A stretch of 64,000 bases of DNA, from the IMG/VR virus record IMGVR_UViG_3300017917_002374, positions 290,960-354,959 of that record. One strand, written 5' to 3'. The position numbers were made by a program, and so were the translations under genes. This document shows positions 8,309-27,339 of this stretch, piece by piece (the stretch's first letter is position 1; every line of letters starts with the position of its first letter). The notes beneath the pieces are model-generated. The model did not search any database. It saw only the letters and a program-made list of their open reading frames with translations, and was not told the DNA's origin.

Positions 8309-8339
8309 TCACGGTAAATATGAAAATAGGATACAACAA

Positions 8340-8540
8340 ATGATATATTTTCCAACAGCACCCACACTAGGACAACGATATGTAGGCATTAACGGCGTTA
8401 CATATACCTGGATGGGCACACATTGGAATGGTGCTCTGGCACTACAACAAGGCACAGCAGAACACTATGTGGACGGCGGTGACGCTGATTTTGAATACGA
8501 TCCACTGCGTGACGGATTATTAGATGGCGGAACAGCCTAA
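8340..8540 (+). CDS. small fibre-associated protein
   Basis: MIYFPTAPTLGQRY...TYTW and DGG motifs; lies between fibre genes. Confidence 0.6.
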   Translation: MIYFPTAPTLGQRYVGINGVTYTWMGTHWNGALALQQGTAEHYVDGGDADFEYDPLRDGLLDGGTA

Positions 8541-8549
8541 GGAAAAACC

Positions 8550-11500
8550 ATGACAACAAGAATCAAATTTAGAAGAGACACAGCGGCAAACTGGACAGCA
8601 GAAAATCCTGTGTTGGCCTTGGGCGAGCCAGGTTTTGAACAGGACACTAATAAATTAAAAATTGGCGATGGCGAAACTGCCTGGTCTGGTTTAGACTATG
8701 CCAGTGGCGGCAGTGACAGTCTCACAAGTGATCACAACATAGCCATCACAGTGGGCAACACAGAATACTTTGCCATTGTGAATCGTACCAATCCAGACGG
8801 TGACAATGGTGTGGATGCTTCAGCAGTGGCCTATGACAGCGAAGGCAATTTAATTACGCTGCATGTGAGTGAAACATACAACACTGTGACTGATGACAAC
8901 ATTGATCAGCTGATCATCAGCAAGTTCAGCAGTACAGGTGCAACACTGTGGCAAAAAGAAATTGACCAAGATATAGATCCAGACACTGTGCATGATGTGG
9001 CCATAGACGCAGATGACAATATCATTGTGGCTGCTAGTGTGGACAATGGCGAAGATTCTGACAGCATTGTGTTGATAAAAATGAACAGCAGCGGCACAGT
9101 GCTGTGGCAGAAAAACTATCAAGGCGGTGCTGATACCTTTTTAGAAGTGGGCGCGATTGCAATCAATGGTGACCATGTGTTTGTATCAGGCTACTACAAC
9201 GATGACACCATAGCAGGAGACGACAGTGGATATCTAATGAAAGTGTTGGTGTCAAACGGCTCAATGATCTGGGCCAAGAGCTTTGACACTGGTGCCAGCT
9301 TTACTAAAATGTTTGGCATGGATGTGGGTGCAGATGGACATCCTGTGATGGTGGGCACTGGCGGAACTGTGGGACCTAATGGTGCTGCGGTGATCAAACT
9401 CAGCGGTACCAATGGTGATGTGCTCTGGGGAGCTACACTGTTTGACAGCGAGAATCTTGACATAGAATACAACGGCGGCGATGTGGTAGTGGACAGTCAG
9501 AACAATGTGTATGTGAGTGTGAACACTTATCAAGACATTGTGCATGATGATGGTAATAACACAGGCGTGACTATTGCTTATGTGAGCAAGATCAACAGCT
9601 CAGGCACAAGACAGTGGACACGCAGAATTGGCCCAGGGCCCTGTGCCAGTGTGGCCACAGGCATAGACTGCGACGACTCGGGCAATGTGTATCTCAGTGC
9701 GTTGACTGTGGCTCAAAAGAACCCAAATCGTGAAGCGAATAACTATTATGACACCGCTATCAATGTGCTGGCCATGGCCAAGTATTCCACAGCAGGCGCA
9801 GTGCTATGGCAGCGTTACATTGAATGCGACGGTTACTGGTTCGATGCATCTTCAGACGAAACTGGCGCTCCTCCGGGTTTTTATAACAATGGCCTCAACA
9901 GAGGTCGTAATCTCAGCCTAGGACCCAATGGCAAATTGGCAGTACAGGTGAGTGTGCGTAAGAAAGACGCAGACGACAATGTTTGGGACAGTAACTACAA
10001 CGAAAGTGTGACATTCCAGATTGATCAGGATGGTCGCGAAATGACCGTGGGGTCGGGCAGTGAAAAGTTCGCTGTAAAGGCCAGCCGTATCCCTGGCAAG
10101 TTTATCGCCCCAGACTACACATTGGCCGACCTAGAAGCAAATCCGTTGCCTATCAGTTCTGTTACCAATGACATCACAGTAACCACTTCTGCGGTGACAT
10201 TTTCAGATGGCATACTTGCACAGCAGGTGGCCAAGAGTGCGCCCTATGAGTATGTGTTTGGCAACGATGGCACACTGACCATTCCCAACGACGGTGATCT
10301 AAAACTGGTTCAAACACAGTTGGGCTGGATCTCTATATTTGGTCCAATCAAGAACAATGATGACAACATAGACATTCGTGCCAGCGTAGTAGATCCTGCA
10401 GATGGTTCAGTGTATGCTGTAGGCGAAAGCGATGACTACAGTACTGGATTTCTCACTCGTTACAACAGTGCAGGACAACTGCTGTGGAGCATTCGCTTCT
10501 CAGACAATACTGATGGCTACAACAACAGAGCCAATGCTGTGCGCATACATCCAGTATCAGGCAATGTGATGGTGCTGTTGGAATACTACGGCAGCTATGA
10601 TTATACGCTGATTGTGGAAGTGGATCCAGACACTGCCAAGGTTGTGAACAGTTTTGGCATACGCGATCTAGGAGACAGCGGCGATGCTCTGGCCTATGAC
10701 TTTGCGTTTACTTCTTCTGCCAATGTGGCCATTGTGGGTCGCAAGTGGGATGAGTGGAGACAGCAGTCTGTAACGCCATTGGTGAGCAGCACCACAGACT
10801 TCTTGGTGTTTAACGCATCAGACATTCAAGGCGATGCCATAACCAACAGTTTTTATGTGAGCGGCACAGGCATTGAGGGTAGATACAATGTGGCGCAGGT
10901 GAACCGTCATGAAGGGCTCACCGGCAATACTTCAGGCTCAGGCAGCAGCTTTGTGTTTGGCATCTACAAGAACAGCAGCGACTCAACCAACTACAATCAA
11001 AGCAGTTATTTCATAACCACCGCAGGCAACAACTATCAAATCAACGACACTATCACGGTGTTGGGCACTGAGTTATATGGCAACACTCCTGCTAACGATT
11101 TGACCGTGACTGTGACCAATGTGGACGGCAGCGGTGGTGTTACTGCCATTGATCTAGCAGGCACACAGCAGAACAGCACAATCAATGTATGGACCAATGG
11201 CCTGGGTGTGAACTTTGGTGGTGTGGGTTCCTGGACCATAGACAACAATCTCAGTGGCGAAGCCTATGTGCTGTCAGCCAACACCGCGGCCAATGCCACA
11301 GTGAGCTGGAGCAAACTGTTGAGTGCGGGTAGTAACAATGACACAGAACGCTATTTCAGTGTGGTAGTAGGCGCAGACAACAGCATCTATGCCGCGGGCG
11401 AAATGATTTCAAGACATGATGCAGCTGGCGGCGATCTAAACAGCTATTGGTGTGCAGTGATCAGCAAGTTTGACAGCGCAGGCAACCATCAATGGACCAA

Positions 11501-12539
11501 GGCTCTCAACGACAATCTCAACGACTGCTATGCCAAGTGCGTGAGCATACAGGGCAATGTGCTGGCAGTGTCACACCACAACAGCGGTAATGGTGTCACA
11601 GTGATCAGCAAGCTGGACACCAGTGGCAATGTAAAATGGCAGCGCAGAACCTACAGCATTGACGACAGTTCAGTGGTGGTAGATACCAATGGCGATATCT
11701 ATGCCGTGGTTGAAGCCAACTTTGAAAATAAATTTAACGATGTGGCCAAGGTTATTCGTTTCAACAGTGTGGGCGAAGTGATCTGGCGCAAGTTCATTGG
11801 ACATCTGTCATATGAATACGGCGCAGCCAGCCTGAGATTCAAGAACGGTCGCAACCTAACTCTGGATGCAGATCACCTGTACATTTCAGGCTACACCTAT
11901 GCTCAGGCAGACAACTATCGTAACGGTGTCGTGATAAAGATTCCCAAGAGCGGAGATTTTGACGGCTACTACGGCAACTGGGCCTTGCAGCAGGAAAATT
12001 ATGATGTGGACCGTGTGTACTCCACAGAAGCTACCACATTCACTCCAGTGATTGGTACAGGTAACTTTGAAAACTGGTCACCAGATTTTGAAACACAATG
12101 GTGGGATCCTAGCAACGACGACTACTATCATACACTGTGGGAAATTGCAGATCGTGATGGCGGTGCTATTGAATTTGCCGACGGCACACGACAGACTCGT
12201 AGTGCTCAGATGATTCCGCAGAAGCGTATTGACAATGGCCTGGATCACAGACTCACACTAGAAGACATGGGCGGCCACATCTACTTTACCAATGTCAGCG
12301 GCAGTGTTGTGCATGTGCCCTATAACAATGACAATCCCTTGCCCATTGGTTTTACCGTGGTAATCGTAAACAACAGCGGCGGTACAGTAAACATTGATGC
12401 AGATGGCGGCGGGATTGACATCATTGTGCCAGGTCAAAGCACAGCACAGTATTGGGACCTTGAGAATTATGGCATGGCCACACTGTTAAAAGTAGCCAAC
12501 GATATCTGGTTTCTAACTGGCAATGTAACGGAAGATTAA
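8550..12539 (+). CDS. tail fibre/adhesin with Mtd_N/hyaluronidase-N-like head and beta-propeller repeats
   Basis: RIKFRRDTAANW...GEPGFEQDTNKLKIGDG; repeated K.DSSG...W.K/R blades; 1329 aa. Confidence 0.75.
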   Translation: MTTRIKFRRDTAANWTAENPVLALGEPGFEQDTNKLKIGDGETAWSGLDYASGGSDSLTSDHNIAITVGNTEYFAIVNRTNPDGDNGVDASAVAYDSEGNLITLHVSETYNTVTDDNIDQLIISKFSSTGATLWQKEIDQDIDPDTVHDVAIDADDNIIVAASVDNGEDSDSIVLIKMNSSGTVLWQKNYQGGADTFLEVGAIAINGDHVFVSGYYNDDTIAGDDSGYLMKVLVSNGSMIWAKSFDTGASFTKMFGMDVGADGHPVMVGTGGTVGPNGAAVIKLSGTNGDVLWGATLFDSENLDIEYNGGDVVVDSQNNVYVSVNTYQDIVHDDGNNTGVTIAYVSKINSSGTRQWTRRIGPGPCASVATGIDCDDSGNVYLSALTVAQKNPNREANNYYDTAINVLAMAKYSTAGAVLWQRYIECDGYWFDASSDETGAPPGFYNNGLNRGRNLSLGPNGKLAVQVSVRKKDADDNVWDSNYNESVTFQIDQDGREMTVGSGSEKFAVKASRIPGKFIAPDYTLADLEANPLPISSVTNDITVTTSAVTFSDGILAQQVAKSAPYEYVFGNDGTLTIPNDGDLKLVQTQLGWISIFGPIKNNDDNIDIRASVVDPADGSVYAVGESDDYSTGFLTRYNSAGQLLWSIRFSDNTDGYNNRANAVRIHPVSGNVMVLLEYYGSYDYTLIVEVDPDTAKVVNSFGIRDLGDSGDALAYDFAFTSSANVAIVGRKWDEWRQQSVTPLVSSTTDFLVFNASDIQGDAITNSFYVSGTGIEGRYNVAQVNRHEGLTGNTSGSGSSFVFGIYKNSSDSTNYNQSSYFITTAGNNYQINDTITVLGTELYGNTPANDLTVTVTNVDGSGGVTAIDLAGTQQNSTINVWTNGLGVNFGGVGSWTIDNNLSGEAYVLSANTAANATVSWSKLLSAGSNNDTERYFSVVVGADNSIYAAGEMISRHDAAGGDLNSYWCAVISKFDSAGNHQWTKALNDNLNDCYAKCVSIQGNVLAVSHHNSGNGVTVISKLDTSGNVKWQRRTYSIDDSSVVVDTNGDIYAVVEANFENKFNDVAKVIRFNSVGEVIWRKFIGHLSYEYGAASLRFKNGRNLTLDADHLYISGYTYAQADNYRNGVVIKIPKSGDFDGYYGNWALQQENYDVDRVYSTEATTFTPVIGTGNFENWSPDFETQWWDPSNDDYYHTLWEIADRDGGAIEFADGTRQTRSAQMIPQKRIDNGLDHRLTLEDMGGHIYFTNVSGSVVHVPYNNDNPLPIGFTVVIVNNSGGTVNIDADGGGIDIIVPGQSTAQYWDLENYGMATLLKVANDIWFLTGNVTED

Positions 12540-12542
12540 ACC

Positions 12543-15002
12543 ATGCCAATCACACAGGTCCTACTAACTTCAACTGTCACAGCGGCTCCACCTCCACCTC
12601 CTCCGCCCACACCTGATGGGCAGTACTACAGTGATGAAACACTGTTGACCTGGGGCAGTGTGGGAGTGGGACAAAACAAGCCCTCATACAATTCCAGTTA
12701 CAGCTATCCAGACAATACAACTGTTGCACCAATTTGGGATTTCAATGGCACCAACCAGTATATGACCACTCAGGTGACCAATGGATACACACAGATATAC
12801 ATGAACCTGTGGTTCTATCCCACTGCTGCTGGTCGTGTTATTATGACCATACAAGGGTCATTGGTAGAAGACTCAGGATATACTCACTCAGCACTGGAGA
12901 TAGCTGCCAACCAAACTGTGATTGGTGCTTTCTGGGCCGGCATGAATCTAGTGAGTGTTAACACAGCCAACTCAGTCACACTCAATGCCTGGAATCATAT
13001 CTATTTTAGACAGAATGCCAATGAGATACTGTTACAGTTAAACGGCGGCACAGCGGTCACGGCCAACAACACTTGGTCGTTGCCCACGCCTGCAATGGTA
13101 ATAGGTATTGGAACTACCTCATCAATGAACAGTGGATACAGTGCGAGATTTGAAGGCAGCCTGGCAGAGTTCCGCATGAACTCAACCAACACGCCCAGCA
13201 ACTACACTTTCACTAGAACCAAGTATGAAGCACCGCAGCAGGTTATCTATGATGACTTTACCATTGAGTGGTGGCAGAAAGCAGAATCCATTGGTGTGAA
13301 TACTCGTCCCTGGGCCATTGGCTTGTTGGGATCCGCATCTGGTCAGGTAGTATCAATCAGTTATGAAGGCAACGGTCGTGACTATTTCTGGATCAACGAC
13401 AGCTTCCCTGCTCAACTGGCAGACAGACCTGTGAAGAATCACTATGGCATTGGTTGGGAACACATGGCCATAGTGCGCAAAGACAATGTGATTAAACTGT
13501 ACAGCAATGGTACCAGTTATCTGACCTGGGCAGGCGGCGGACAAGCCATAACAGCAACCAACGCAGACCTAGTGGTAGGCACAGGTGAGATACCCAACGG
13601 CAACTTCCAAGGTTGGATCAAAGACCTGCACATCATCAAAGGCTACGCAAAATATAATGCCAACTTCTCAGTGCCAGTATTGCCCGTACAACCACAGACT
13701 GGTACTGTGTTCCTCCTGCCAGCCATGAGTTCTGGCACAGCATTTGATGATGTTGTAAGTTACAAGGCGGCTATACTGAGCAATACACCAACTTACAGTG
13801 AAGATGATCCATTTACATATCCAGGTGCTACATTCACTGCTATAGGATATGGTAATAATCTCATAACACCGGCGTCAACGCCACCTAATTTACGAGTTGG
13901 TCTCCTAGTCAGCGATGGAGCAGGGTGGAGCGACTATATCATTGATCCAAATTATTTTGGTAACCTACAGTTTTCAAGCCTACCAGCAAGCACACCGCCT
14001 GAACTTGTATACACTGTGTCTGAAGACTTAACCAGTGTCACACAAGGTACCAATACCTACGGTGGCAGTGGTCCTAATTGGAATGTAGACTACAGCAGTA
14101 CCAACTTCAATGTGGAACTGTTAAAAGTAAGAGTGGGCTGGACAGTGGCCTATGGTGAAGATATACTAGGCACAGTGACTGGCAATGCATATCTTATTAC
14201 ACCAGAAGTTATCAGAATAGGTGTAGATTTTGATCCTGGTACAGCAGGCGGTTTGACATTTACATATCTGCCTCCTACATATGGTGGTAGCATACGCTTT
14301 GACGCAGGTGACCGTATCAACTATGGCAGCAGTGTGGACTGGGCCTTTGACATAGACGCCATTACCACAGGCAACATCACACTGAATCTAGATGCCAATG
14401 ACATCAGCAGCTATACCGGCAGTGGTAGCACCTGGACTGATCTGTCAGGCAACAACAATGCCACCTTGATTGGCACTCCCTACTGGGACAACGGACCTCC
14501 GGCCTACTTTGAATTCAACGGTATCAATCAGTATGCCACTGTGCCTGGCACCAATATTGTGCCTGCTGCGGCCTATACCAAAATGGTATGGTTCCGTATC
14601 AACACATTCTCAGCAGACAACAACCTGATCAGCAGCGACAATGGTGGACACTTCATGTATTTCAATCAGACCACCACACTGTATGCTGGTCACAGCAATG
14701 TGTTCCCCTACAATGCGTTTGGTTCGGCCACAACCTTTAGCACCAACACCTGGTACTGTGCCACAGTCACATTCAGTGTGGCCAATGGTATCAAACTGTA
14801 TGTGAATGGTGTGTTAGACGCCAGCGACCCCAGCTACCAAACTCCACACAATCAAAACGGCAATACCAACATTGCCTGCTTTGGTATAGGTGGAAATCTG
14901 TTGAATGGTCGTATTGGACGCCTGATGTGCTATGGTAAAGAACTCACTGCACAGGAAGTGTTGAACAACTTCAACGCCACAAGAAATCGCTATGGTGTTT
15001 GA
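12543..15002 (+). CDS. LamG/concanavalin A-like lectin-domain virion protein
   Basis: N-terminal polyPro; repeated FNG..Y, W.H, LYVNG and G.IG...Y LamG motifs. Confidence 0.75.
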   Translation: MPITQVLLTSTVTAAPPPPPPPTPDGQYYSDETLLTWGSVGVGQNKPSYNSSYSYPDNTTVAPIWDFNGTNQYMTTQVTNGYTQIYMNLWFYPTAAGRVIMTIQGSLVEDSGYTHSALEIAANQTVIGAFWAGMNLVSVNTANSVTLNAWNHIYFRQNANEILLQLNGGTAVTANNTWSLPTPAMVIGIGTTSSMNSGYSARFEGSLAEFRMNSTNTPSNYTFTRTKYEAPQQVIYDDFTIEWWQKAESIGVNTRPWAIGLLGSASGQVVSISYEGNGRDYFWINDSFPAQLADRPVKNHYGIGWEHMAIVRKDNVIKLYSNGTSYLTWAGGGQAITATNADLVVGTGEIPNGNFQGWIKDLHIIKGYAKYNANFSVPVLPVQPQTGTVFLLPAMSSGTAFDDVVSYKAAILSNTPTYSEDDPFTYPGATFTAIGYGNNLITPASTPPNLRVGLLVSDGAGWSDYIIDPNYFGNLQFSSLPASTPPELVYTVSEDLTSVTQGTNTYGGSGPNWNVDYSSTNFNVELLKVRVGWTVAYGEDILGTVTGNAYLITPEVIRIGVDFDPGTAGGLTFTYLPPTYGGSIRFDAGDRINYGSSVDWAFDIDAITTGNITLNLDANDISSYTGSGSTWTDLSGNNNATLIGTPYWDNGPPAYFEFNGINQYATVPGTNIVPAAAYTKMVWFRINTFSADNNLISSDNGGHFMYFNQTTTLYAGHSNVFPYNAFGSATTFSTNTWYCATVTFSVANGIKLYVNGVLDASDPSYQTPHNQNGNTNIACFGIGGNLLNGRIGRLMCYGKELTAQEVLNNFNATRNRYGV

Positions 15003-15463
15003 TGTTTACACTCAGTCAAGTTGAAGTAGACCCTGGAGTGGCAGCGCAGGTTGTTGCTCTGTTTCAACAGCTGGATCGTGGACGCGGTGGTCCAATGGGC
15101 ACCTGGCACGGCCAGCGACTGCGTGACAATCCTTACCCATGGTTTCAATCCACCTTTGATCGTGTTACAGCGGCTCTGAGCCATCTGCGCATAGATGAAT
15201 GGTGGTTCAACTGTGGCCAGGCAGGCGACGAATATCGTTGGCACGAGCATGTGCCCTATCCTTGGGCTGCTGTGCTGTATGTTCAAACGCCAGAAAACTC
15301 TGGAGGCATAGAATTTCGCCGCCAGGAGGAGTATGCTGCATTTCAACCAGTAGCAGGTGATTTTCTGTTGTTTTCGGGTAATCTTGCTCACAGGGTTTTG
15401 CCCAATAAAAGTGCAGATTATAGAATAAGTGTGGCGTTCAACTTAACCTCCAGATCTAAATAA
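15002..15463 (+). CDS. 2OG-Fe(II) oxygenase (TIGR02466-like)
   Basis: WHEH, AAVLYV, GDFLLFSGNLAHRV, RISVAFN. Confidence 0.75.
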   Translation: MFTLSQVEVDPGVAAQVVALFQQLDRGRGGPMGTWHGQRLRDNPYPWFQSTFDRVTAALSHLRIDEWWFNCGQAGDEYRWHEHVPYPWAAVLYVQTPENSGGIEFRRQEEYAAFQPVAGDFLLFSGNLAHRVLPNKSADYRISVAFNLTSRSK

Positions 15464-15487
15464 ATAACATAATAATAGGTTAAAAAT

Positions 15488-18400
15488 ATGGCCAAGCAGA
15501 TACAATTACGTAGAGGAACCACACTAGAGCATAGCACATTTGTTGGTGCTGTAGGAGAAGTCACTGTAGATACCACAAAAGATGTAGTGGTAGTGCATGA
15601 TGGAATTACCAGTGGAGGCGTTCCTGGAGCAAGAGAGCAAGACATTTCAGCAGCAAATGCTGCTATTGCCACACTTACAGCAAACGTTGGGCTACTACGG
15701 GTTGACGTTAATGCTCTAGATCCGGGCGGCGCAGCAGCAGCCCAGGCACAGCTTAGAGCCAACATCACAGCAGCTAATGTAAAAATTTCCAATCTAGAAA
15801 GTAATGCTGTTGTACAAGCTGTACAAATTGCTGGATTGACAACGGACTTGGCCGGCGCCAATTCGTCTATAACCAGTTTGCAGATCTCGTTGGGCATTAC
15901 CAATAGTACTCTGGTACAATTACAAAATTCTGATACTGCGGTCAATGCAGCTATTGTGAGTCTAGAAACATTTGCATATTCAAATGCAGCCACACAGAAT
16001 TCTTTGATTAATGACCTAAGAGCCAACATCACAGCAGCCAATGCAGCCATACTGGTGAATACCGATCGTGTGACAGCAGCCAATATAGAAATTGCTGCGC
16101 TGAGAGCCAACATCACAGCAGCTAATGCTGAAATCACAAATCTTTACAGTAATGCATCTACACAATCCACACAGATTTCTAGCATCAACTCAAATGTGGC
16201 CGCAGCTAATGTTGGCATTGCACTAGGAGTCAGTAGAAGTATTGCAGCCAATGTTGAAATTGAAGCATTAAGAGGCAACATCACTGCGGCCAATGTACAG
16301 ATCGCTATTAATACCAATAGATCCATGGCAGCAAATATTGAAATTGGAAATTTAAGAGCCAATATAACTGCGGCCAATGCAGCCATAACCTCAGCTAACA
16401 CCTACAACATCAATTTAACCAACAGTACCTACACCACCTTGTTGGGTGGAGCAGATAGTAATTTTAACACCTTGAACAAACTGGCCAATGCGGTGGCTGG
16501 CGATCCTGCATACAGCAGCACAGTAAATGCTACCTTTGACAGTATTAGAGCAAACATCACTGCGGCCAATGCAGCCATACTGGTGAATACTAATCGGGTA
16601 ATAGCGGCCAACGCAGCAATTGTTCTAACGCAACAAGGTGTGGACGGTGCTAATACTCGTGTGGCAGCAGCCAATGTGCTGAACGCAGTAACCAATGCTA
16701 ATTTAACTGCGGCCAACGCACAGATAACCAATATCAGAAACGTGGTATCCAGTAATGGAAATGTCTACACCAGTAATGCAGTGATTGGTAATTTGTATCT
16801 AGACGATCACTTTTTTGCCAACGGCGCACAGTTTATTGCTAACTCAACCAATTGGCTGTATGTGGTTGAATCTCCTGATGATAGTGTAGCATACAACATA
16901 CCTTATATTGGTTCAGATCTTAACAGTACAGCAGTATCAGATTCATACAAACAGTTTTACAGTGATACAAACACACTAACATTTAACCCAGGACTGAATC
17001 TTTTATTATCTCCTAACATTAGCACTACCTCAAATGCGCAGGCCACATCAACTACCACTGGTGCTCTGAGAATCACCGGTGGAGCAAGCATTGCAATTGG
17101 TAATCTTTATATTGGTGGTAGTGCAGGAAGAAGTATCACAGCCACAGGTAATATTGTAGTAACTGGTGATGCCTCAACTGCGGCCAACACTGGTGCACTG
17201 GTAGTTGCTGGCGGTGTTGGGGTATCCGGTAATGTGAATATTGGTACATCGCTAGGATTGATCGGTGCAGGCGACCAAGCGTTCCGTATGGGACTAAACA
17301 GCCAAGGACAGTTGGAATTTGTTCCAAATCAAGTGGCCAGTGTGTCCGGCGGTGTTCCGGTACTGATCATTGATGACGATGGTGGTGCAATTTGGGCAAA
17401 CATTGCATTTGTAAGCAATTCAAATCTTTCAGTTACAGCCAGTACCGTGAGCTCTTCAAGTTCAACTGGTGCATTGCGAGTAACAGGCGGTGCTGGTATT
17501 GGCGGTTCATTGCATGCCGCAGGAAACATTGTGAGCGAAGCAACCACAGCAAGCACAGACGTTAGTACAGGTGCACTGATTGTTGCTGGTGGTGCTGGCA
17601 TTGGCGGAGCAATCAACATAGGCGGTATAGGAAAAATTACAGGCAATTTGGTAGCTGCTTCAACTACCAATAGCACCTCTACAACCACAGGTGCTCTAGT
17701 AGTAGCAGGCGGAGTAGGCATAGCCAACAGTGTGATTACCGGCGGCAATATAGTAGCCGCATCTGGAACAGAAAGCACAAACACAACCACAGGCGCCGTG
17801 GTAGTCACAGGCGGTGTGGGAATAGCAAACAGATTGAATGTTGGCGGAAACATTGTGGCATTGGCCACAACCACAAGCACAAACACAACCACAGGCGCCC
17901 TGGTAGTTGCAGGAGGTGTGGGTATTGGCGGAACAGTGGTTGCAGGCGGAAATATTGTGGCATCGGCTGCCACAGCCAGTGTGAATACTACTACAGGCGC
18001 ATTGGTAGTCACTGGGGGTGCGGGTATTGGTGGAGCCTTGCAAGTTGGTGGCAACGCAGTATTAGGCAGTGGCACTGCAACTTCTAGCACAACCACAGGA
18101 GCACTAGTAGTCACTGGTGGTATAGGACTCAGTGGTAACATTGTTGCTGGAGGCGGCATTGAAATTGCTGGAAACATTCTGTCAACTGCAGGACAAATTA
18201 GAGTTAGCACCGGAACAGAAAGTACCAGTACTAGTACAGGTGCACTGGTAGTTACGGGTGGTGCTGGTATTAGCGATAGATTAAATGTTGGCGGCAATGT
18301 GGTTATCACCAGTAGTGCAACCAGTACAGATACAACCACAGGAGCATTAGTAGTTGCTGGAGGAGTGGGTATTGGTGGCAATCTAGTGGTTGCTGGCAAT

Positions 18401-19633
18401 CTCAGTGTAGGTGGAGGCAGTTTGTCCAGCTTTGTTGCTGGCATGGACATGGTCAACTCTGCAGACAGTACCAGCGGTCATTATGTAAAACTGGCTACTA
18501 TTCCAGTTATGCAAGCAGCAGATGTTGCTGAAGTGGTAATCAGCTGTTTGGTTACTGGTAGATATCTACCAGCAATAGAAGCATATCGTGTGCTGGTACG
18601 AGCAGTTGGATCCAGTGCAACAGGTGCAGTTCCACAACTGTATGTGGAATCTTTATTAAACAATCAAACAAAGACAACTTTTAATGCTAGCGATTTTGTT
18701 TTAAGTTATAACGCCAGTACTTACGCAGCCTACGATTTATACTATCAGTTCAATGATGCAAATCAAAGATTATTTGCCAAATTTGATCTAGTCACCAGCG
18801 AGGACACAACCTATACTGGCAATTATTGGCAACTGTTAAGTGGTCAGACTACTTCTGCTTCGTTTACCAGTCTTGGAACCACATTGTCCGGTATTGAAAT
18901 GGGCAAGAGTGTAAGTAACCTCATTGTAAGTTACAGTGCCAGTGTTACTTCGGCCAACACATCAACATCTACCAGCACAGGTGCACTGGTAGTCACAGGT
19001 GGTGTAGGCATTGGTGATCGGTTGAATGTTGGCGGCAATGTGGTATTAACCAGCGGAACATCTAGTGCTAGTACTGTTACTGGTGCGCTAGTGGTGTCTG
19101 GCGGAATTGGAGCGTCTGGTAATATCATTGTTGCAGGCAATATTATCAGTCAAAGCACTTTTACCACACAGATAGCCGCAGGAGCCACTGCCACTCGTCC
19201 TGGCGCTCCAGCGGTTGGTATGATACGATACAATACCACATTGCAAAGTTACGAAGGGTATGGTGCCGGGGCAGCTTGGTCCAGTCTTGGAGGAGTTAAG
19301 TCAGTTTCTGGAAACGCTTATATCAGTGCAGAATTGTCAGCTGCCAGCGGCGACGATGTGTTAAGATTCTATTCAGGCAGTGCTGGCCCTAGTCAGCAGG
19401 TTGCTTATATGAGCGCCAGCAACGTTGGTATTATTATTAACACAGCAGCAACTAGTACCAGTACTGGAGCACTACAGGTTTCAGGTGGTATTGGTTTAGC
19501 AGGAAACTTATTTTCAGGTGGTAATGTGTATGTTCGTTCTAGAATTGGATTTACTTTTGGTGCAAACGCAACTAGTGCAGTTTATCAACAGTATAATCAG
19601 GCCACAAACAGTCTTGACACAATCTTTGGATAA
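15488..19633 (+). CDS. long tail fibre: Mtd_N-like head, LRANITAANA coiled-coil repeats, TGALVVxGGxG repeats
   Basis: QIQLRRGTT...GEVTVDTTKDVVVVHDG; internal repeats; GMIRYNT motif; 1381 aa. Confidence 0.8.
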   Translation: MAKQIQLRRGTTLEHSTFVGAVGEVTVDTTKDVVVVHDGITSGGVPGAREQDISAANAAIATLTANVGLLRVDVNALDPGGAAAAQAQLRANITAANVKISNLESNAVVQAVQIAGLTTDLAGANSSITSLQISLGITNSTLVQLQNSDTAVNAAIVSLETFAYSNAATQNSLINDLRANITAANAAILVNTDRVTAANIEIAALRANITAANAEITNLYSNASTQSTQISSINSNVAAANVGIALGVSRSIAANVEIEALRGNITAANVQIAINTNRSMAANIEIGNLRANITAANAAITSANTYNINLTNSTYTTLLGGADSNFNTLNKLANAVAGDPAYSSTVNATFDSIRANITAANAAILVNTNRVIAANAAIVLTQQGVDGANTRVAAANVLNAVTNANLTAANAQITNIRNVVSSNGNVYTSNAVIGNLYLDDHFFANGAQFIANSTNWLYVVESPDDSVAYNIPYIGSDLNSTAVSDSYKQFYSDTNTLTFNPGLNLLLSPNISTTSNAQATSTTTGALRITGGASIAIGNLYIGGSAGRSITATGNIVVTGDASTAANTGALVVAGGVGVSGNVNIGTSLGLIGAGDQAFRMGLNSQGQLEFVPNQVASVSGGVPVLIIDDDGGAIWANIAFVSNSNLSVTASTVSSSSSTGALRVTGGAGIGGSLHAAGNIVSEATTASTDVSTGALIVAGGAGIGGAINIGGIGKITGNLVAASTTNSTSTTTGALVVAGGVGIANSVITGGNIVAASGTESTNTTTGAVVVTGGVGIANRLNVGGNIVALATTTSTNTTTGALVVAGGVGIGGTVVAGGNIVASAATASVNTTTGALVVTGGAGIGGALQVGGNAVLGSGTATSSTTTGALVVTGGIGLSGNIVAGGGIEIAGNILSTAGQIRVSTGTESTSTSTGALVVTGGAGISDRLNVGGNVVITSSATSTDTTTGALVVAGGVGIGGNLVVAGNLSVGGGSLSSFVAGMDMVNSADSTSGHYVKLATIPVMQAADVAEVVISCLVTGRYLPAIEAYRVLVRAVGSSATGAVPQLYVESLLNNQTKTTFNASDFVLSYNASTYAAYDLYYQFNDANQRLFAKFDLVTSEDTTYTGNYWQLLSGQTTSASFTSLGTTLSGIEMGKSVSNLIVSYSASVTSANTSTSTSTGALVVTGGVGIGDRLNVGGNVVLTSGTSSASTVTGALVVSGGIGASGNIIVAGNIISQSTFTTQIAAGATATRPGAPAVGMIRYNTTLQSYEGYGAGAAWSSLGGVKSVSGNAYISAELSAASGDDVLRFYSGSAGPSQQVAYMSASNVGIIINTAATSTSTGALQVSGGIGLAGNLFSGGNVYVRSRIGFTFGANATSAVYQQYNQATNSLDTIFG

Positions 19634-19636
19634 TGC

Positions 19637-21250
19637 ATGAGTTACCTAGTCCATAGATTAACATCCACTGGTGATCTGATTCTTTATGAAGGAAGTTTAG
19701 ACGAAATTTCTTCTTCTAACATAAAGATCAGTGACACAGCTACTACATCGGCTGAATTTGACGAAGTTAGTCTAAACGGCGCATTAAATGGTGTTGTTAA
19801 AAAAGAATATTCTAATGGTAATTTGTCCATAGCAGGTACATTTAACGAACTTGAATACGAAAACGAGGAGGTTTACACTGTACCAGGCGTTTATTCTTGG
19901 ACATGCCCTTCTGGAATTTCGTCAGTAAGTGTGGTATGTATTGGTGCAGGTGGTGCAGGCGCAGCTCCTGGGCCTGGTGGTGCTGGTGGCGGACTACGAT
20001 ACATAAATGATCTTACAGTTACGCCAGGAACCACATATACCGTGATTGTTGGTGCCGGCGGGCTCGCTGGTAACGGTAATTCGCCTGGTGGGTACAGTGC
20101 ATTTGGATCTAATATTGTGTTTGCCACTGGAGGGGAATCTCTAACAGCAGGATCATTGCAAACTCCACTTGGCGGCACTGGAAGCACTATAGGTGGTAAT
20201 ATAGGTGGCGCCGACGGTGGTGCTGGTGGTGCTTATCGTGGTGCTCAAGGCGGCGGCGGTGGCGGAGGTGGTGCTGGTGGGTATTCCAGCAACGGAGGTG
20301 CTGGTGGTGCTGGTGGAACATTTTCCCCACTAACTAACGGAGTTTCAGGACAGAACAGCACAAACGGTGGTGCTGGCGGCTCTGGTGGTAGCGGAGAATA
20401 TGCTGGTAATCCAAATGGACGAGGCGGCGGAGCAGGTGGTGGTGTAGGCGTATTTGGATTGTCAGGTACCACAGCCACGGGTGGAAATGCAGATGCCTTT
20501 GGTAACGGTGTTGGGGGGCTTGGAGGATCAGCTGGTACTAGCGGAGCAAACTATACTGGATCACAAACTGCTGCGGGTGGATTATACGGTGGTGGCGGTG
20601 GTGGCGGTGCTATAGCAGGACATGGTGGGCCTGGAGCAAATGGTGCAGTGAGAATCATGTGGAGTTTGAGACAATTAAACAGACAATTTCCAAGCCTCAA
20701 TACCAAGCGTATTTTGACTAATGAAATAATGAATACAGCTTTAGTCTCAGGGGTGACAGGTAGTTATAGTTTAGATTGGAAAACATCACTAAGACATCGG
20801 GTGGCGGTGGAGTTTAATAGTGTTGAAGATATTAGAAATTTTTTCAAGCTAGGCGGCAGTATTCGTATTGATGCCGGAGCATCGGGCGGGGGAATTATTG
20901 GATCTAAAACCAGCGATTGGCTTACTTTTCTTTCTGCTGTGCAGCCAGTCAGTTACACTGCAAGCAGTTTTCGTAGAGGCGGAAATCTAGTTGTAAGATC
21001 CAAAACTTTTGTAGGAGGCTATTATAGTGCCAACTATATTCAAGCATGGGGCGAGTTAGTTAATGATACCACTATAGTTATGACAGCAATTTTTGATGAT
21101 GCATCCGTACAAACCGGACTTGGCGGCTCTGCATTTGACGAATTTGTAAGTGGAATCTCTGTTACAAGCACCGTGGATTATTTAAGACCAGTGGGTGGAA
21201 TTACTGGCCCGGCTCCGACTTTTACTACAATTTACAGTTTAGGACCGTAA
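19637..21250 (+). CDS. glycine-rich virion protein
   Basis: WTCPSGISSVSVVCIGAGG...GANGAVRIMW glycine-rich domain within the fibre cluster. Confidence 0.65.
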   Translation: MSYLVHRLTSTGDLILYEGSLDEISSSNIKISDTATTSAEFDEVSLNGALNGVVKKEYSNGNLSIAGTFNELEYENEEVYTVPGVYSWTCPSGISSVSVVCIGAGGAGAAPGPGGAGGGLRYINDLTVTPGTTYTVIVGAGGLAGNGNSPGGYSAFGSNIVFATGGESLTAGSLQTPLGGTGSTIGGNIGGADGGAGGAYRGAQGGGGGGGGAGGYSSNGGAGGAGGTFSPLTNGVSGQNSTNGGAGGSGGSGEYAGNPNGRGGGAGGGVGVFGLSGTTATGGNADAFGNGVGGLGGSAGTSGANYTGSQTAAGGLYGGGGGGGAIAGHGGPGANGAVRIMWSLRQLNRQFPSLNTKRILTNEIMNTALVSGVTGSYSLDWKTSLRHRVAVEFNSVEDIRNFFKLGGSIRIDAGASGGGIIGSKTSDWLTFLSAVQPVSYTASSFRRGGNLVVRSKTFVGGYYSANYIQAWGELVNDTTIVMTAIFDDASVQTGLGGSAFDEFVSGISVTSTVDYLRPVGGITGPAPTFTTIYSLGP

Positions 21251-21284
21251 ATGCAAGTTGTTTATTTTTTGAATAAGTAATATT

Positions 21285-23951
21285 ATGGCGAAATTATTAT
21301 CTGGTACCAGAATTTATGGTAATGTACAAATTGACACTAACGCAATTGTGCTAGGGTCAAATGTCAGCACTTCTTCTACTACAGGTGCGCTAGTAGTCAC
21401 AGGTGGCGCGGGCATTGGCGGAGCTCTAAACATTGGCGGGAGTAGCACTGTTGGCGGAATACTGCGGACAAGCAATACCACTCCAAGCACAAACTCTACC
21501 ACAGGTGCTCTGGTAGTAGCAGGCGGAGCAGGCGTAGCCGGAAACTTGTTTGCAACAGGCAATGTGGTACTTGGCACAGGTACCACAAGTAATGTGGTCG
21601 TAGATGCTACCACAATCTCATCTAGTATCACCACAGGAGCACTGGTAGTAAGAGGTGGCGTGGGTATAGCTGGCACGCTCACATTACAAAATGTTGGAGA
21701 CGTATCGGCAAACATTGGAAGTCTAGTTGTAGCAGTTGGTGGTGGCACAGGACTAAGCGGCAACCTGGGTGCTTTCCAAACCTATGCCAATAGTAAAATT
21801 GGCACAAACACAAACAGCAACTTGGTTGTGGTATCCACTACTCCAAGCACAAACTCTACCACAGGTGCTCTAGTAGTAGCAGGTGGCGTTGGTGTTGCTG
21901 CACAACTGAATGTAGACGGTGTTACCACAATTAATAATACCACAGCCAGTACATTCAACACCACTGGTGCATTGATAGTGGCAGGTGGTGTGGGCGTTGG
22001 ATCACAGTTAAATGTTGGTGGTCGTGTTACACTTAGTAACACACAACCGGCCACAGATATCAATCCAACTCAAGGTGCATTGTATGTTACTGGCGGAATG
22101 GGTGTTGGCTCGCAATTGTATGTGGCAGGGCAGGTAAATTTTGCCAATATCACAAATGCCACTGGTTTCAATACAGGTGGTTTAAGAGTGGCTGGTGGCG
22201 TGTCCATAGCACAAAATCTTTATTCGTTTGGCAACACTTTTCTTGGATCAGGCGTCACAAGCAATGTGGTTGTATCGGCCTCAACACCAAGTACCAGCAC
22301 CACAACAGGTGCTTTGGTAGTTCAAGGAGGCGTTGGCATACAAGGTAGACTTAATATTTCGTCTAACACTATTATATCCGGAAGTGCCACCACAGACTTC
22401 TCTAGTGGTGCTCTGGTAGTGTTTGGTGGGGTTGGTGTTTCTGGCGCAGTAATTACCAATGGTAACATTGTTGCTGGTGCAGCAACAGGAAGCAATGGCC
22501 CAACCACAGGAGGTTTGGTAGTGGTTGGTGGTATGGGTGTTGGACAACAGTTAAGCGCCAACGGTAGGGTGATTGTAAGCAACACCACTCCTAGTTCCAG
22601 TTGGTTTACAGGTGCACTAACAGTCAGCGGCGGAGTGGGTATTGCAAATCAGTTGAATGTGTTGGGCAACGCAAGCATATCTAACACTGCTGTGAGTACC
22701 AGTACTACCACAGGTGCACTAACAGTCAGTGGCGGTGTAGGTATAGCTGGCAGTCTGTTTATTGCGGGCACAGGTGATGTGGCTGCTAATATTGCTAGTC
22801 TGACTGTAGCAGTAGGAGGTGGCACTGGACTTAGTGGCAACCTTGGAGCGTTCCAGACTTATGCTAATAGCAAAATAGGCACCAATACCAACAGCAACTT
22901 GGTTGTGGTATCCAGTACAGCCAGTACCAACACTACCACAGGTGCATTAGTGGTGTCTGGTGGTGTTGGTATCAGCGGAGCATTAAATGTAGGTAGTCAG
23001 TCTGCTTTTACTGCAACTAACACATTGACTTACCCAAGCTATGCGCCAATAATACAATTAAATAGTACAAACACAACTGCACTGTTTAGTGTTAATAGCA
23101 GTGAATCTGGATCAATGGCAATAGGTGTAACTCCAGGGGGTGTTGGTAGAATTCAAACGCAACTTGGTGCAACAGCAACTCCTATCATAATTGGACCTAA
23201 TGGAGCAAATTCTAGTAATGTGGTCATCACTGCTACTACCACTAGCACTACTACCACAACAGGTGCTTTGGTAGTAGCAGGTGGTGCAGGTATCGCTGGT
23301 AGTCTGTATGCAGGAAACTTAGTTGTAGCAGGAAATTTACTACTTGGGTCAGGTACCACAAGCAATGTGGTAATCAATGCTACCACTACTTCAACATCAA
23401 GTACCACCGGAGCTTTAGTAGTTTCCGGCGGAGTAGGGGTGGTTGGTAATCTAGTCGCAGCAGGTAATGTTGTTATTGGGTCAGGTACCACAAGCAATGT
23501 GGTAATCAATGCTACCACTACTTCAACATCAAGTGCTACTGGCGCACTTGTAATAAGAGGAGGATTAGGACTAGCAGGAGCTTTTAACAGTGCAGGTACT
23601 ATAAGCATCACTTCCAACACAGCTGGTATAGGTTATGGTAATGGGGCAGGCGGCCAAGCTATACAAATCACAAGTCGAACCACAGGAGTAACCATAAACA
23701 CTCCAACTGGTGTAATTACTTTAGTATCAAATGCAGGATCGCCTAGTTGGCAGTCGTTTACAGTGACTAATAATCAAGTTGGTAATAACGATGTGGTAAT
23801 AGTAAATCAACGCTCTGGTACAGATCTTTACATGATACATGTAACCGCAGTGGCAGCAGGCAGTTTCCGCATATCCTTTGCAACCACAGGCGGAACCACA
23901 GTAGAATCTCCGTCTTTTAATTACGCTATTGTAAAAGGCGCAATTATTTAA
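21285..23951 (+). CDS. tail fibre protein built from STSTTTGALVVxGGxGI repeats
   Basis: Many copies of the repeat; 888 aa; last gene of the fibre cluster. Confidence 0.75.
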   Translation: MAKLLSGTRIYGNVQIDTNAIVLGSNVSTSSTTGALVVTGGAGIGGALNIGGSSTVGGILRTSNTTPSTNSTTGALVVAGGAGVAGNLFATGNVVLGTGTTSNVVVDATTISSSITTGALVVRGGVGIAGTLTLQNVGDVSANIGSLVVAVGGGTGLSGNLGAFQTYANSKIGTNTNSNLVVVSTTPSTNSTTGALVVAGGVGVAAQLNVDGVTTINNTTASTFNTTGALIVAGGVGVGSQLNVGGRVTLSNTQPATDINPTQGALYVTGGMGVGSQLYVAGQVNFANITNATGFNTGGLRVAGGVSIAQNLYSFGNTFLGSGVTSNVVVSASTPSTSTTTGALVVQGGVGIQGRLNISSNTIISGSATTDFSSGALVVFGGVGVSGAVITNGNIVAGAATGSNGPTTGGLVVVGGMGVGQQLSANGRVIVSNTTPSSSWFTGALTVSGGVGIANQLNVLGNASISNTAVSTSTTTGALTVSGGVGIAGSLFIAGTGDVAANIASLTVAVGGGTGLSGNLGAFQTYANSKIGTNTNSNLVVVSSTASTNTTTGALVVSGGVGISGALNVGSQSAFTATNTLTYPSYAPIIQLNSTNTTALFSVNSSESGSMAIGVTPGGVGRIQTQLGATATPIIIGPNGANSSNVVITATTTSTTTTTGALVVAGGAGIAGSLYAGNLVVAGNLLLGSGTTSNVVINATTTSTSSTTGALVVSGGVGVVGNLVAAGNVVIGSGTTSNVVINATTTSTSSATGALVIRGGLGLAGAFNSAGTISITSNTAGIGYGNGAGGQAIQITSRTTGVTINTPTGVITLVSNAGSPSWQSFTVTNNQVGNNDVVIVNQRSGTDLYMIHVTAVAAGSFRISFATTGGTTVESPSFNYAIVKGAII
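23344..23534 (+). repeat. perfect 59-bp direct repeat inside the fibre gene
   Basis: TTGGGTCAGGTACC...TCAACATCAAGT at 23344-23402 and 23476-23534. Confidence 0.9.
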
Positions 23952-25084: not shown

Positions 25085-25762
25085 ATGAGCCTTTCTTTGG
25101 AAAACACCATTCAACTTTCGTCCACTGGTGTACAAAACTTTTTTAGAGACATTTTCATGCGCATGACAGCAGCACTCACAATCAGTGCTGTTACGGCTGG
25201 ACTGGCCAGTATGTTACCGTTTCTTTACACAGGCGGTATTCTGACCTGGTTGATTATTCTCAGCCCGCTGGCTTTTGTTTTGGCTATGAGTTTTGGCAGT
25301 GAACGTTTTAGTACTAATACCTTGATCATGCTGTTCTTGGGTTTTGCTGTTGCACAAGGCCTAAGCATGGGAAGTATATTTTTGGTTTATACAGGTGCTA
25401 GTATTTTCACAGCATTTTTAATGGCCGCAGTGACTTTTGGCAGCTTTGCACTAATTGGTTACACAACCAAACGAGATCTTACCAGCATGGGCACGTTCCT
25501 GTTTGTGGGGTTGATTGGAATCATCATAGCCAGTGTGGTAAATATTTGGCTTGCGCTGCCCGTGTTGGCACAAGTTATCAATGTGTTGGCAGTGATCATC
25601 TTTGTAGGACTCACTGCATATGATGTGCAGAAGTTAAAAGAAATTTATTACAGTGGAACAGATGATGGTAAAATTCGTACACTAGGTGCCTTGACATTGT
25701 ATCTGGATTTTATTAACATCTTTATGGCGCTGCTGCAATTGATTGGCGGCAAGCGAGAATAA
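25085..25762 (+). CDS. Bax inhibitor-1/YccA family membrane protein
   Basis: About 7 hydrophobic segments; GYTTKRDLT, TAYDVQKLK, LYLDFINIF motifs. Confidence 0.9.
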   Translation: MSLSLENTIQLSSTGVQNFFRDIFMRMTAALTISAVTAGLASMLPFLYTGGILTWLIILSPLAFVLAMSFGSERFSTNTLIMLFLGFAVAQGLSMGSIFLVYTGASIFTAFLMAAVTFGSFALIGYTTKRDLTSMGTFLFVGLIGIIIASVVNIWLALPVLAQVINVLAVIIFVGLTAYDVQKLKEIYYSGTDDGKIRTLGALTLYLDFINIFMALLQLIGGKRE

Positions 25763-25856: not shown

Positions 25857-26021
25857 ATGCAAAATCAAGAATATGTGCCTGGCACATGCGGCTGCGGTCG
25901 TAGCCCAACCGGTAATTGTATTGGTTGGCATGGTCTAAGTGAAGATGAATTTAGACAAGCCCTGGCAGAATATGAAGTAAAACTTTTGGAACAAAGGAAA
26001 AATGATGCAAGTAACAGCTAG
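25857..26021 (+). CDS. CDGSH-like iron-sulfur/zinc-finger small protein
   Basis: CGCGRSPTGNCIGWH resembles C-x-C-x2-S-x3-P-x-C-D-G-S-H; SD AGGA before ATG 25857; ends in TAG. Confidence 0.65.
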   Translation: MQNQEYVPGTCGCGRSPTGNCIGWHGLSEDEFRQALAEYEVKLLEQRKNDASNS

Positions 26022-26274
26022 ACATATTTTGGTTTCAGATCTAAACACTGCTCTGACTATCAAGGCCAAAATCACAGAAGGCACTCAATTTGGCGATTTA
26101 GCTAGAGCACACAGTTCATGTCCTAGTAGAGCACGTGACGGTGACCTTGGATCATTTGGTCCAGGCATGATGGTGAAACCATTTGAAGACGCTGCATTCG
26201 CTCTTGATGTTGGGCAGATTAGCGAACCTGTACAAACACAGTTTGGCTGGCATTTGATTCAAAGAACAGGTTGA
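26002..26274 (+). CDS. ppiC: parvulin-type peptidyl-prolyl cis-trans isomerase
   Basis: ARHILV, FGDLARAHSSCPS...GDLG.F..G.MV.PFE.AAF.L..GQIS.PV.TQFGWHLI. Confidence 0.92.
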   Translation: MMQVTARHILVSDLNTALTIKAKITEGTQFGDLARAHSSCPSRARDGDLGSFGPGMMVKPFEDAAFALDVGQISEPVQTQFGWHLIQRTG

Positions 26275-26278
26275 TCTT

Positions 26279-26286
26279 TATAAATA
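26279..26286 (+). promoter_or_regulatory. T4-type late promoter TATAAATA ahead of the tRNA array
   Basis: Exact match, 22 nt upstream of tRNA-Thr. Confidence 0.6.
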
Positions 26287-26308
26287 TCATGCTATAATTT
26301 GTGTATTA

Positions 26309-26383
26309 GCTGGCGTAGCACAACGGTAGTGCAACGGATTTGTAATCCGTAGGTTGAGGGTTCGATTCCTTTCGCCAGCACCA
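26309..26383 (+). tRNA. tRNA-Thr(TGT)
   Basis: GCTGGCG/CGCCAGC acceptor, ACGGA-TTTGTAA-TCCGT arm, encoded CCA. Confidence 0.93.
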
Positions 26384-26590
26384 AGAACCTCGGGGTCCCT
26401 ACTCGTTAATAATAGGGGGTAAATTGGCTTCACCATAATGCCAGGGCTCATACGATGATAGCCCCAAAGCCCGCTTACATGGGTGATAGAAAAATCGTAG
26501 GTGGGTACTACACCTTGCCACAAGTAAATGTAGCGGACAGAGTAACAGCTCAGTTAGGGGCTAGTGAGGACTAGTAGCCTAACAAGAATA
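26384..26590 (+). ncRNA. candidate structured non-coding RNA of about 205 nt
   Basis: No credible ORF; at least five local hairpins; sits between two tRNAs. Confidence 0.5.
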
Positions 26591-26593
26591 CAT

Positions 26594-26669
26594 GCGGGAG
26601 TAGCTCAGTTGGTAGAGCGCAACCTTGCCAAGGTTGAGGTCGAGAGTTCGAGACTCTTCTCCCGCTCCA
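26594..26669 (+). tRNA. tRNA-Gly(GCC)
   Basis: GCGGGAG/CTCCCGC acceptor, loop TTGCCAA, TCCA end. Confidence 0.96.
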
Positions 26670-26689: not shown

Positions 26690-26839
26690 ATGGGAGATCC
26701 ACGTTCTAAAAACAAAGCAGCAAAAACAAAAGAGAGCAAGGCACCACATCAACAGATCCAAAAAAACACAGCAATGAAAACACAAGCAGTACAAGTTCCA
26801 CAACAAAAAGTAATGCGAAACACCGGTAGAGGTAGATAA
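26690..26839 (+). CDS. small Lys/Gln-rich basic protein, 49 aa
   Basis: SD AAGGAG, ATG 26690; ends VMRNTGRGR. Confidence 0.65.
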   Translation: MGDPRSKNKAAKTKESKAPHQQIQKNTAMKTQAVQVPQQKVMRNTGRGR

Positions 26840-26936: not shown

Positions 26937-27182
26937 ATGGAAAATCAAATTGCAGTAGAAGTTATTCAAGCAGCGAATTTTGTCACAGGTGCAATACTAA
27001 TCAGTCTTGGTATTATTATCATTGTAGGTGCTATTCTGTTGATCAACAACATGTTCACTAGATTCTGGCGCCCTATCAAGGTGTTCACATACATTGCAGC
27101 CAAGATTTCACCAGAAGACGCTGCTGCAATAGAAGCTTCAAAAGAACAACGCAAGGCCGCACAGCCCACAATTGTTAAATAG
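26937..27182 (+). CDS. small membrane protein
   Basis: One long hydrophobic segment; SD GAGG; ends in TAG. Confidence 0.65.
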   Translation: MENQIAVEVIQAANFVTGAILISLGIIIIVGAILLINNMFTRFWRPIKVFTYIAAKISPEDAAAIEASKEQRKAAQPTIVK

Positions 27183-27265: not shown

Positions 27266-27339
27266 GCACTAGAAGCTGATCGGATAGCTGAAGCCTCTAA
27301 AACTTCTGGTAGTGGGTTCGACTCCCACCTGGTGCACCA
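27266..27339 (+). tRNA. amber suppressor tRNA (anticodon CTA)
   Basis: Acceptor GCACTAG/CTGGTGC plus ACCA; D-arm GCT/AGC; anticodon stem GAAGC/ACTTC (31:39 C-A mismatch) with loop CT-CTA-AA; T-arm GTGGG-TTCGACT-CCCAC. Confidence 0.85.

Follow-up and report, generated by a model that had tools for sequence, protein, structure and literature searches.

The gap of roughly 205 bases between two tRNA genes of a 355-kb phage encodes a member of a conserved, phage-only family of very tightly folded non-coding RNAs, for which we found no published description and whose function is unknown. The family is found in at least 120 IMG/VR phage contigs, and comparative evidence shows that its members fold into 13 helices, five of which are pseudoknots. 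The window analyzed here is a stretch of 64,000 nucleotides corresponding to bases 290960-354959 of a 354,959-bp IMG/VR virus record with direct terminal repeats. Within this window the RNA occupies the 210-nt gap (26384-26593, + strand) between tRNA-Thr(tgt) and tRNA-Gly(gcc), in a loose array that also holds tRNA-Met, tRNA-Val, tRNA-Gly(tcc) and a tRNA with anticodon CUA. A preliminary description of the sequence had drawn attention to this segment as a highly structured non-coding element inside the tRNA array, and our analysis confirms that this observation is real.

To determine whether the segment is more structured than expected by chance we first compared its folding energy with that of dinucleotide-shuffled sequences. 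The + strand folds to -62.5 kcal/mol, which is not significant (z = -1.5, 15 of 200 shuffles folding as well), and the fold of the - strand is weaker (z = -0.86). On thermodynamics alone the segment is therefore not unusual, and the term highly structured holds only through the comparative evidence. To gather relatives we used the neighbouring gene, which encodes a 90-aa PpiC-type parvulin PPIase (26002-26274, +; Pfam E 4.7e-21), as a handle and retrieved 50 related phage loci, in about 20 of which nhmmer found the segment nearly full-length and co-oriented. A 19-nt core motif then hit at least 120 further IMG/VR stretches. In all, nhmmer and a covariance model gave 150 hits in 170 loci, of which 88 are unique full-length sequences, 71 of them below 88% mutual identity. 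The PPIase travels with the RNA in 38 related loci. Just upstream of the array the window also carries a Bax1-I (BI-1/YccA-like) membrane protein (25085-25762, +; Pfam E 2.6e-52), which like the PPIase is unusual phage cargo.

The segment is not coding. The 78 homologues examined average about 4 stops in each of the six frames, their lengths (184-222 nt) are spread evenly over the three classes mod 3, and the ATG at 26455 that opens a 39-aa ORF in the window (26455-26574) is kept in only 4 of 78. In contrast, the other gaps between the tRNAs are filled by short ORFs with strong Shine-Dalgarno sequences (25857-26021, 26690-26839 and 26937-27182, +; 54, 49 and 81 aa), so that the tRNA array is interleaved with tiny genes. 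None of these has a Pfam match and the 81-aa product looks like a membrane protein.

The absence of conservation or covariation, together with the lack of a discrete transcript, had been named in advance as an outcome that would refute a structured RNA, and we tested conservation and covariation. RNAalifold run on a plain MAFFT alignment of 18 sequences gave 27 pairs, 16 of them with compensatory double changes. A covariance model (R1, 208 positions, 40 pairs), which matches the window at 26385-26588 with 150.8 bits, was then used to align 94 sequences. On this alignment 88.9% of cells are standard pairs against 68.3% when partners are shuffled, 35 of the 40 nested pairs show compensatory changes on both sides, and the covariation score is 0.517 against 0.168 in shuffles (0 of 500 shuffles reach it) and at most 0.119 when partners are slid by 1-3 columns. 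These controls do not model phylogeny and the alignment is fitted to the nested structure, although the result obtained with MAFFT only agrees with it. One G.U pair is kept in 94 of 94 sequences and many other G.U pairs occur, which fixes the + strand as the RNA strand and, together with the weaker fold of the - strand, rejects a minus-strand RNA.

Next we asked whether the loops pair with each other. The best antiparallel complement between every pair of 12 unpaired segments (66 segment pairs) was taken within each of 76 sequences, and its mean was compared with 1000 permutations in which the partner segment came from another sequence. Five segment pairs clearly stand out: P9, the loop of P8 with the strand before GGAC (z = 12.9); P6.1, the loop of P6 with the strand before P8 (z = 11.7); P2, the 5' strand with the start of the P3 loop (z = 8.8); P1, the 5' end with loop L12 (z = 8.0); and P4, J3/5 with the P5 loop (z = 5.1). 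The next pair, at z 4.1, overlaps P2, and all the others lie between z -3.2 and 2.2. Because the pseudoknot registers vary between sequences and the pseudoknot columns of the alignment are out of register, a second covariance model including the pseudoknots was not built and no per-pair statistics are given for these helices; the permutation tests, which likewise do not model phylogeny, were used instead. In the window the 13 helices cover about 118 of 200 nucleotides. The features of the locus, all on the + strand, are as follows.

26271..26298 (+): sigma-70-like promoter TTGATC-16-TATAAT with a TG extension (10 of 12 consensus matches, a consensus match only, not tested), with an expected start near 26305, 4 nt before tRNA-Thr.
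26309..26383 (+): tRNA-Thr(tgt) with encoded CCA (73 bits), whose 3' end abuts the RNA.
26384..26593 (+): the whole inter-tRNA segment, taken as the ncRNA gene; the folded core is 26388-26583, and 26584-26593 is the 5' leader of tRNA-Gly.
26388..26391 (+): 5' strand of P1 (CCUC), pairing with GAGG at 26566-26569 in the loop of P12, a long-range pseudoknot that closes the molecule; covarying pairs are CCUC/GAGG, AUCCC/GGGAU, UCCCA/UGGGA, CACU/AGUG and CAUU/AAUG.
26391..26405 (+): P2, 26391-26394 (CGGG) with 26402-26405 (CUCG), forming an H-type pseudoknot with P3; covarying pairs are CGCA/UGCG, CAGA/UCUG, CGUG/CACG and CAGU/ACUG.
26397..26417 (+): P3, 26397-26401 with 26413-26417; all 5 pairs compensatory, z = 18.9.
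26418..26434 (+): P4, GGU 26418-26420 with ACC 26432-26434 in the loop of P5, forming a pseudoknot with P5; GGU/ACC changes to CGU/ACG.
26425..26443 (+): P5, 26425-26428 with 26440-26443; 4 of 4 pairs compensatory.
26444..26464 (+): P6, 26444-26448 with 26460-26464, supported by covariation.
26451..26499 (+): P6.1, UACGAU 26451-26456 in the loop of P6 with AUCGUA 26494-26499, a pseudoknot that spans P7.
26469..26484 (+): P7, 26469-26472 with 26481-26484; 5 of 5 pairs compensatory.
26500..26519 (+): P8, 26500-26505 with 26514-26519; 6 of 7 pairs compensatory, 70.8% paired.
26508..26533 (+): P9, CUACA 26508-26512 in the loop of P8 with UGUAG 26529-26533, an H-type pseudoknot with an A-rich third loop; covarying pairs are GCUUG/CAAGC, ACGUUA/UAACGU and AUAACA/UGUUAU.
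26535..26552 (+): first part of the 3' module, GGAC, then P10 (26539-26540 with 26549-26550, plus A.G and G.A pairs 26541-26542 with 26547-26548, and a UAAC loop), then CA; shared by all three subtypes.
26553..26583 (+): second part of the 3' module, P11 (26553-26558 with 26578-26583), an invariant internal loop G / AG with a G.U closing pair (26559; 26576-26577), P12 (26560-26564 with 26571-26575) and loop L12 (26565-26570); 97.8% paired, 9 of 11 pairs compensatory, the G.U kept in 94 of 94.
26594..26669 (+): tRNA-Gly(gcc).

A non-Watson-Crick covariation (A.G to G.A) inside P10 points to a structured, T-loop-like or tandem-GA hairpin, a label that is our own reading and not a tested result. 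With this model in hand we re-examined the pairings of the preliminary description. Four of its five hairpins are confirmed by covariation: TCCCTA/TAGGGG is P3, TGGC/GCCA is P5, GGGCT/AGCCC is P6 and GTTAGG..CTAGT/ACTAG..CCTAAC is P11/P12. The fifth, AGGTG/CACCT, has the right 5' strand but the wrong partner, the conserved helix being P8. The proposed pairing of the 5' CCTC with the 3' GAGG is real and covaries (P1), but it is a pseudoknot that can form together with the hairpins and not an alternative to them. The proposed pairing of TCCCTA with the 3' TAGGGG is peculiar to the window and is not conserved (z = 0.6). Finally, the best promoter match is the one at 26271-26298 and not TATAAATA at 26279. 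Apart from these three details (the register of one hairpin, the alternative fold and the position of the -10 box), the interpretation offered there, namely a structured ncRNA co-transcribed within the tRNA array and matching none of the known phage tRNA-array RNAs, is supported, since the structure is conserved and covaries in more than 90 homologues, the segment lies on the tRNA strand behind a sigma-70-like promoter, and no known family matches. Transcription itself was not examined.

Comparison of the members revealed three subtypes, the window sequence being of type 1. All share the 5' pseudoknot (P1-P3), P6 and, almost letter for letter, a 3' module of about 50 nt composed of UGGAC, the P10 hairpin AGRGUAACARCU, CAGU and the P11/P12 hairpin with its GGGC/GUAGC internal loop, whereas the middle of the molecule differs between subtypes. 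P1 covaries between subtypes, with ACC/GGU in type 1, UUCC/GGAA in type 2 and CACUACC/GGUGGUG in type 3. Several loci hold type 1 and type 2 within 2 kb. The window's own genome has a second, divergent copy, of type 2, outside the window at 152180-152404 (+) of the genome record (1501-1725 of the extracted locus L175; 34.6 bits, E 6e-9), which starts at the last base of tRNA-Tyr in the phage's 18-tRNA cluster.

To analyze the genomic context we examined 109 non-redundant full-length loci. Of these, 103 have a same-strand tRNA within 1 kb and 49 have a tRNA ending within 4 nt of the model start, drawn from 12 isoacceptors (Thr-UGU in 24). The next tRNA lies within 15 nt in 16 loci, as in the window, and 16-200 nt away (median 93) in 67 loci. 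In those 67 loci the interval commonly holds a second conserved element that the window lacks, a 17-20 bp AU-rich stem (CACUUUAAUnAAACACA ... UGUGUUUnAUUAAAGUG) with visible compensatory changes around an insert of about 60 nt, followed by a tRNA (for example at 3816-3905, 4796-4890 and 2207-2295 of the related loci L018, L115 and L108, respectively). This element could be an RNase III-type processing stem or another ncRNA. Type 3 in the related locus L060 fills the gap between tRNA-Val and tRNA-Asn exactly. In about 25 loci the RNA starts 0-3 nt after the TAA stop codon of a conserved 190-aa hypothetical protein ending in LQAEGLL/I (for example 354-929 of L091 and 4994-5566(-) of L090), which has no Pfam or PHROG assignment and only hypothetical relatives. 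Its homologue in the present genome, at 68499-69068 of the record, lies 249 kb from the RNA and is not followed by it. In two further loci, L016 and L012, there is no tRNA or ORF upstream but a 12/12 and an 11/12 sigma-70 promoter, respectively, each ending exactly 10 nt before the model start. The 5' end therefore falls at the same place whether it is made by transcription initiation or by processing, which is the signature of a discrete RNA gene.

A match to a known family had been put forward beforehand as the result that would remove the novelty of the segment. No such match was obtained. Searching the segment with the 4227 covariance models of Rfam 15 gave no hit at gathering score or at E <= 10, and searching seven other members of the three subtypes gave no hit at E <= 5. 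Blastn searches of 50,697 GenBank phage records with the window segment and with type 1 and type 3 members returned only tRNA hits or none. The 20-nt core motif occurs once in 185,579 prokaryote species genomes, in a 10-kb MAG contig, where only 17 nt match the model. A literature search found no paper holding the core motif and no description of the family, although it may be one of the 8,495 unnamed IMG/VR candidate csRNAs of PMC10690425, with which it was not compared.

We then compared the RNA with the closest known systems. The T4 species 1 and 2 stable RNAs (rnaC and rnaD) are likewise small RNAs of unknown function encoded inside a phage tRNA cluster, on the tRNA strand and directly next to a tRNA, a setting which the present RNA shares, and they are matured by the tRNA-processing enzymes. 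However, model R1 run with filters off on NC_000866 68500-74500 gave 0.8 bits over rnaC/rnaD, indicating no sequence or structure relation; the T4 RNAs are 119 and 139 nt long and we know of no comparable set of pseudoknots for them. GOLLD and ROOL are ornate phage and prophage RNAs of unknown function, often beside tRNA islands, with many pseudoknots and no known protein partner, but they are much larger (many GOLLD members exceed 800 nt) and their Rfam models do not match; their cage-forming oligomerisation was not assayed for the present RNA. The HDV-like theta ribozymes of gut phages are placed with one end flush against the 3' end of phage tRNAs, including suppressor tRNAs, and are described as minimal HDV-like ribozymes (PMC10879173). 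They are much shorter and have the HDV nested double pseudoknot, in the order P1-P2-P3-P3'-P1'-P4-P2', whereas the order found here is P1-P2-P3-P2'-P3'...P1', no HDV-type Rfam model matches, and the RNA also occurs behind promoters and stop codons and has no demonstrated cleavage. The present array also holds a tRNA with anticodon CUA (27266-27339, +; called tRNA-Pyl by ARAGORN, Rfam tRNA 50.2 bits), which starts 1 nt after tRNA-Gly(tcc), is of amber-suppressor type and is also present in the close relative L002; whether the phage reads TAG as sense was not examined, and no alternative code was used in our analysis. The chain of H-type pseudoknots recalls tmRNA, and the short loop pairing recalls that which closes or links molecules of phi29 pRNA, but the RNA has no tRNA-like domain, tag ORF or CCA end, and there is no packaging context. 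A genuine permuted (two-piece) tmRNA of betaproteobacterial type lies elsewhere in the genome, at about 50297-50741 (+) of the record (398-842 of the extracted locus L178; RF01850 at 87 bits with a cut-off of 84, RF04321 at 90.6 bits, also called by ARAGORN), which hints at a betaproteobacterial host. RNase P RNA is not supported either, as no Rfam RNase P model (types A, B, archaeal, T) matches at E <= 10, the alignment contains no CR-I motif (GAGGAAAGUCC-like), and the 5' end pairs with loop L12 and not with the 3' end; GACAGA..GCUCA resembles CR-V only loosely and pairs locally as P10, and the strand order also argues against RNase P RNA. A riboswitch or cis-regulatory leader was likewise not supported, because the downstream features vary (six or more tRNA species and ORFs) and no terminator-like site or expression platform was found on the + strand.

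In our best reading, which we hold with moderate confidence, the segment encodes a discrete, stable, trans-acting RNA released by tRNA processing. What the data establish directly is a conserved and compact fold of eight nested and five pseudoknot helices with the 5' end tucked into the loop of the 3'-terminal hairpin, precise ends, an almost invariant 3' module, variable neighbours, and paralogues in separate tRNA clusters; the steps that follow are deduced. The RNA would be transcribed with the tRNAs from the promoter at 26271-26298 and cut out by the host's tRNA-maturation enzymes, trimming of the tRNA-Thr 3' trailer setting its 5' end and RNase P cleavage at the 5' end of tRNA-Gly, an established step of tRNA maturation, setting its 3' end. 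The long stem found downstream in relatives looks like an RNase III-type site. Tucking the 5' end into L12 and ending in a long hairpin should protect both ends and make the RNA stable. Action in trans is suggested by the variable upstream and downstream neighbours, by the absence of a terminator or expression platform and by the second copy in another tRNA cluster, and the partly unpaired 3' module is the likeliest surface to bind a conserved partner. Such a partner is probably host-encoded, since no Ro60, RtcB, CCA-adding enzyme or RNase III was found in the phage and no neighbouring protein family is found in more than 51 of 130 related loci, the count reached by a 76-aa protein with an RNA polymerase Rpb6/omega domain (PF01192, E 4.5e-9; for example 5838-6068 of L115) lying on the same strand within a few kb of the RNA. 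This inference rests on absence of evidence, and no partner, ligand or activity is known. The direct succession of the RNA to the stop codon of the 190-aa gene in about 25 loci would also suit a cis-acting 3' element, and the theta ribozymes provide a ribozyme precedent for a 5' end flush with tRNAs. The company the RNA keeps in this genome, 30 tRNAs and a tmRNA, points to translation or tRNA metabolism, and the partner is probably part of the translation or tRNA machinery.

Among the alternatives, a large self-cleaving ribozyme is possible though unlikely. It would cut at or near its own 5' end and so release the 3' end of the upstream tRNA or mRNA, as the theta ribozymes do, or it would be a trans-cleaving, RNase P-like helper for the phage's 30 tRNAs and its tmRNA. 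The starts flush with tRNA 3' ends and stop codons are in line with this, the 5' nucleotides are held in a pseudoknot as in the HDV and glmS ribozymes, and five pseudoknots with an invariant irregular core are typical of catalytic RNAs. Neither self-scission nor cleavage of pre-tRNA 5' leaders was assayed. However, some members sit 10 nt behind consensus promoters with nothing to release, the strand order is not that of HDV, no Rfam ribozyme or RNase P model matches at E <= 10, the ends do not form an RNase P-type P1, and the P1 strand begins 3-5 nt after the CCA and not at it. Slightly less likely, the RNA may be a cis-acting element of the polycistronic transcript, acting as a stabiliser, an exonuclease block or a processing spacer that insulates the folding and maturation of neighbouring tRNAs or mRNAs. 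It is always co-oriented with its neighbours and flush with the upstream gene, a covarying stem follows it in many relatives, and there is one copy in each of two tRNA clusters. In contrast, a simple hairpin would do that job, and a 13-helix fold with about 50 invariant nucleotides is far more than a block needs; moreover two of the genome's four tRNA groups lack the RNA, and some members stand alone behind their own promoter with no tRNA within 1 kb (L016).

An RNA-only assembly, a small counterpart of ROOL/GOLLD or phi29 pRNA in which P1 forms between molecules to give head-to-tail rings or cages, appears more remote. The RNA shares with ROOL and GOLLD the phage niche next to tRNA islands and a conserved 3' and variable 5' region, covariation cannot tell intramolecular from intermolecular P1, and no protein partner is evident, but it is a quarter to a third of their size, does not match their Rfam models, and intramolecular P1 is sterically plausible and simpler; no data on oligomers were available. 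A degenerate tRNA or tmRNA, a small protein gene or chance structure, which the position between tRNAs, the 39-aa ORF and the modest MFE might suggest, is ruled out by the covariation, by the lack of ORF conservation, by the absence of Rfam tRNA and tmRNA matches, and by ARAGORN, which even with introns allowed, 70-80% thresholds and mitochondrial mode found nothing credible, the single call at the 80% threshold being a minus-strand model with a 100-nt intron that overlaps tRNA-Gly.

Elsewhere in the window, a run of very large proteins (819-1425 aa; 4031-23951, +) carries Mtd_N (major tropism determinant N-terminal), collagen-repeat, laminin-G/ConA-like and glycine-rich domains and probably represents tail fibres or receptor-binding proteins.

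Phage tRNA clusters have carried unexplained stable RNAs since the T4 species 1 and 2 RNAs and, more recently, GOLLD and ROOL. The present family adds a third, unrelated RNA class in the same niche, and it is abundant, with at least 120 contigs and three subtypes, often two per genome. At about 205 nt it is small enough for probing, crystallography or cryo-EM, and its sharply defined ends and 50-nt module make clean targets for pull-downs, cleavage assays and mutagenesis. A more far-reaching reading, which we regard as tentative only, is that it is a new class of large natural ribozyme or self-assembling RNA carried by freshwater jumbo phages, either a catalytic RNA of roughly 200 nt that matures tRNA-array transcripts by self-cleavage at the tRNA 3' end or by trans cleavage, or a ring or cage built through intermolecular pairing of the 5' end with L12. 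Either way it would be among the most pseudoknot-dense natural RNAs known, with five pseudoknots in about 200 nt. If it proves to be a ribozyme or a modulator of host tRNA or translation machinery, it would show a new way for jumbo phages to take over translation, and if it is only a stable scaffold it is still a new RNA fold for structure-prediction benchmarks.
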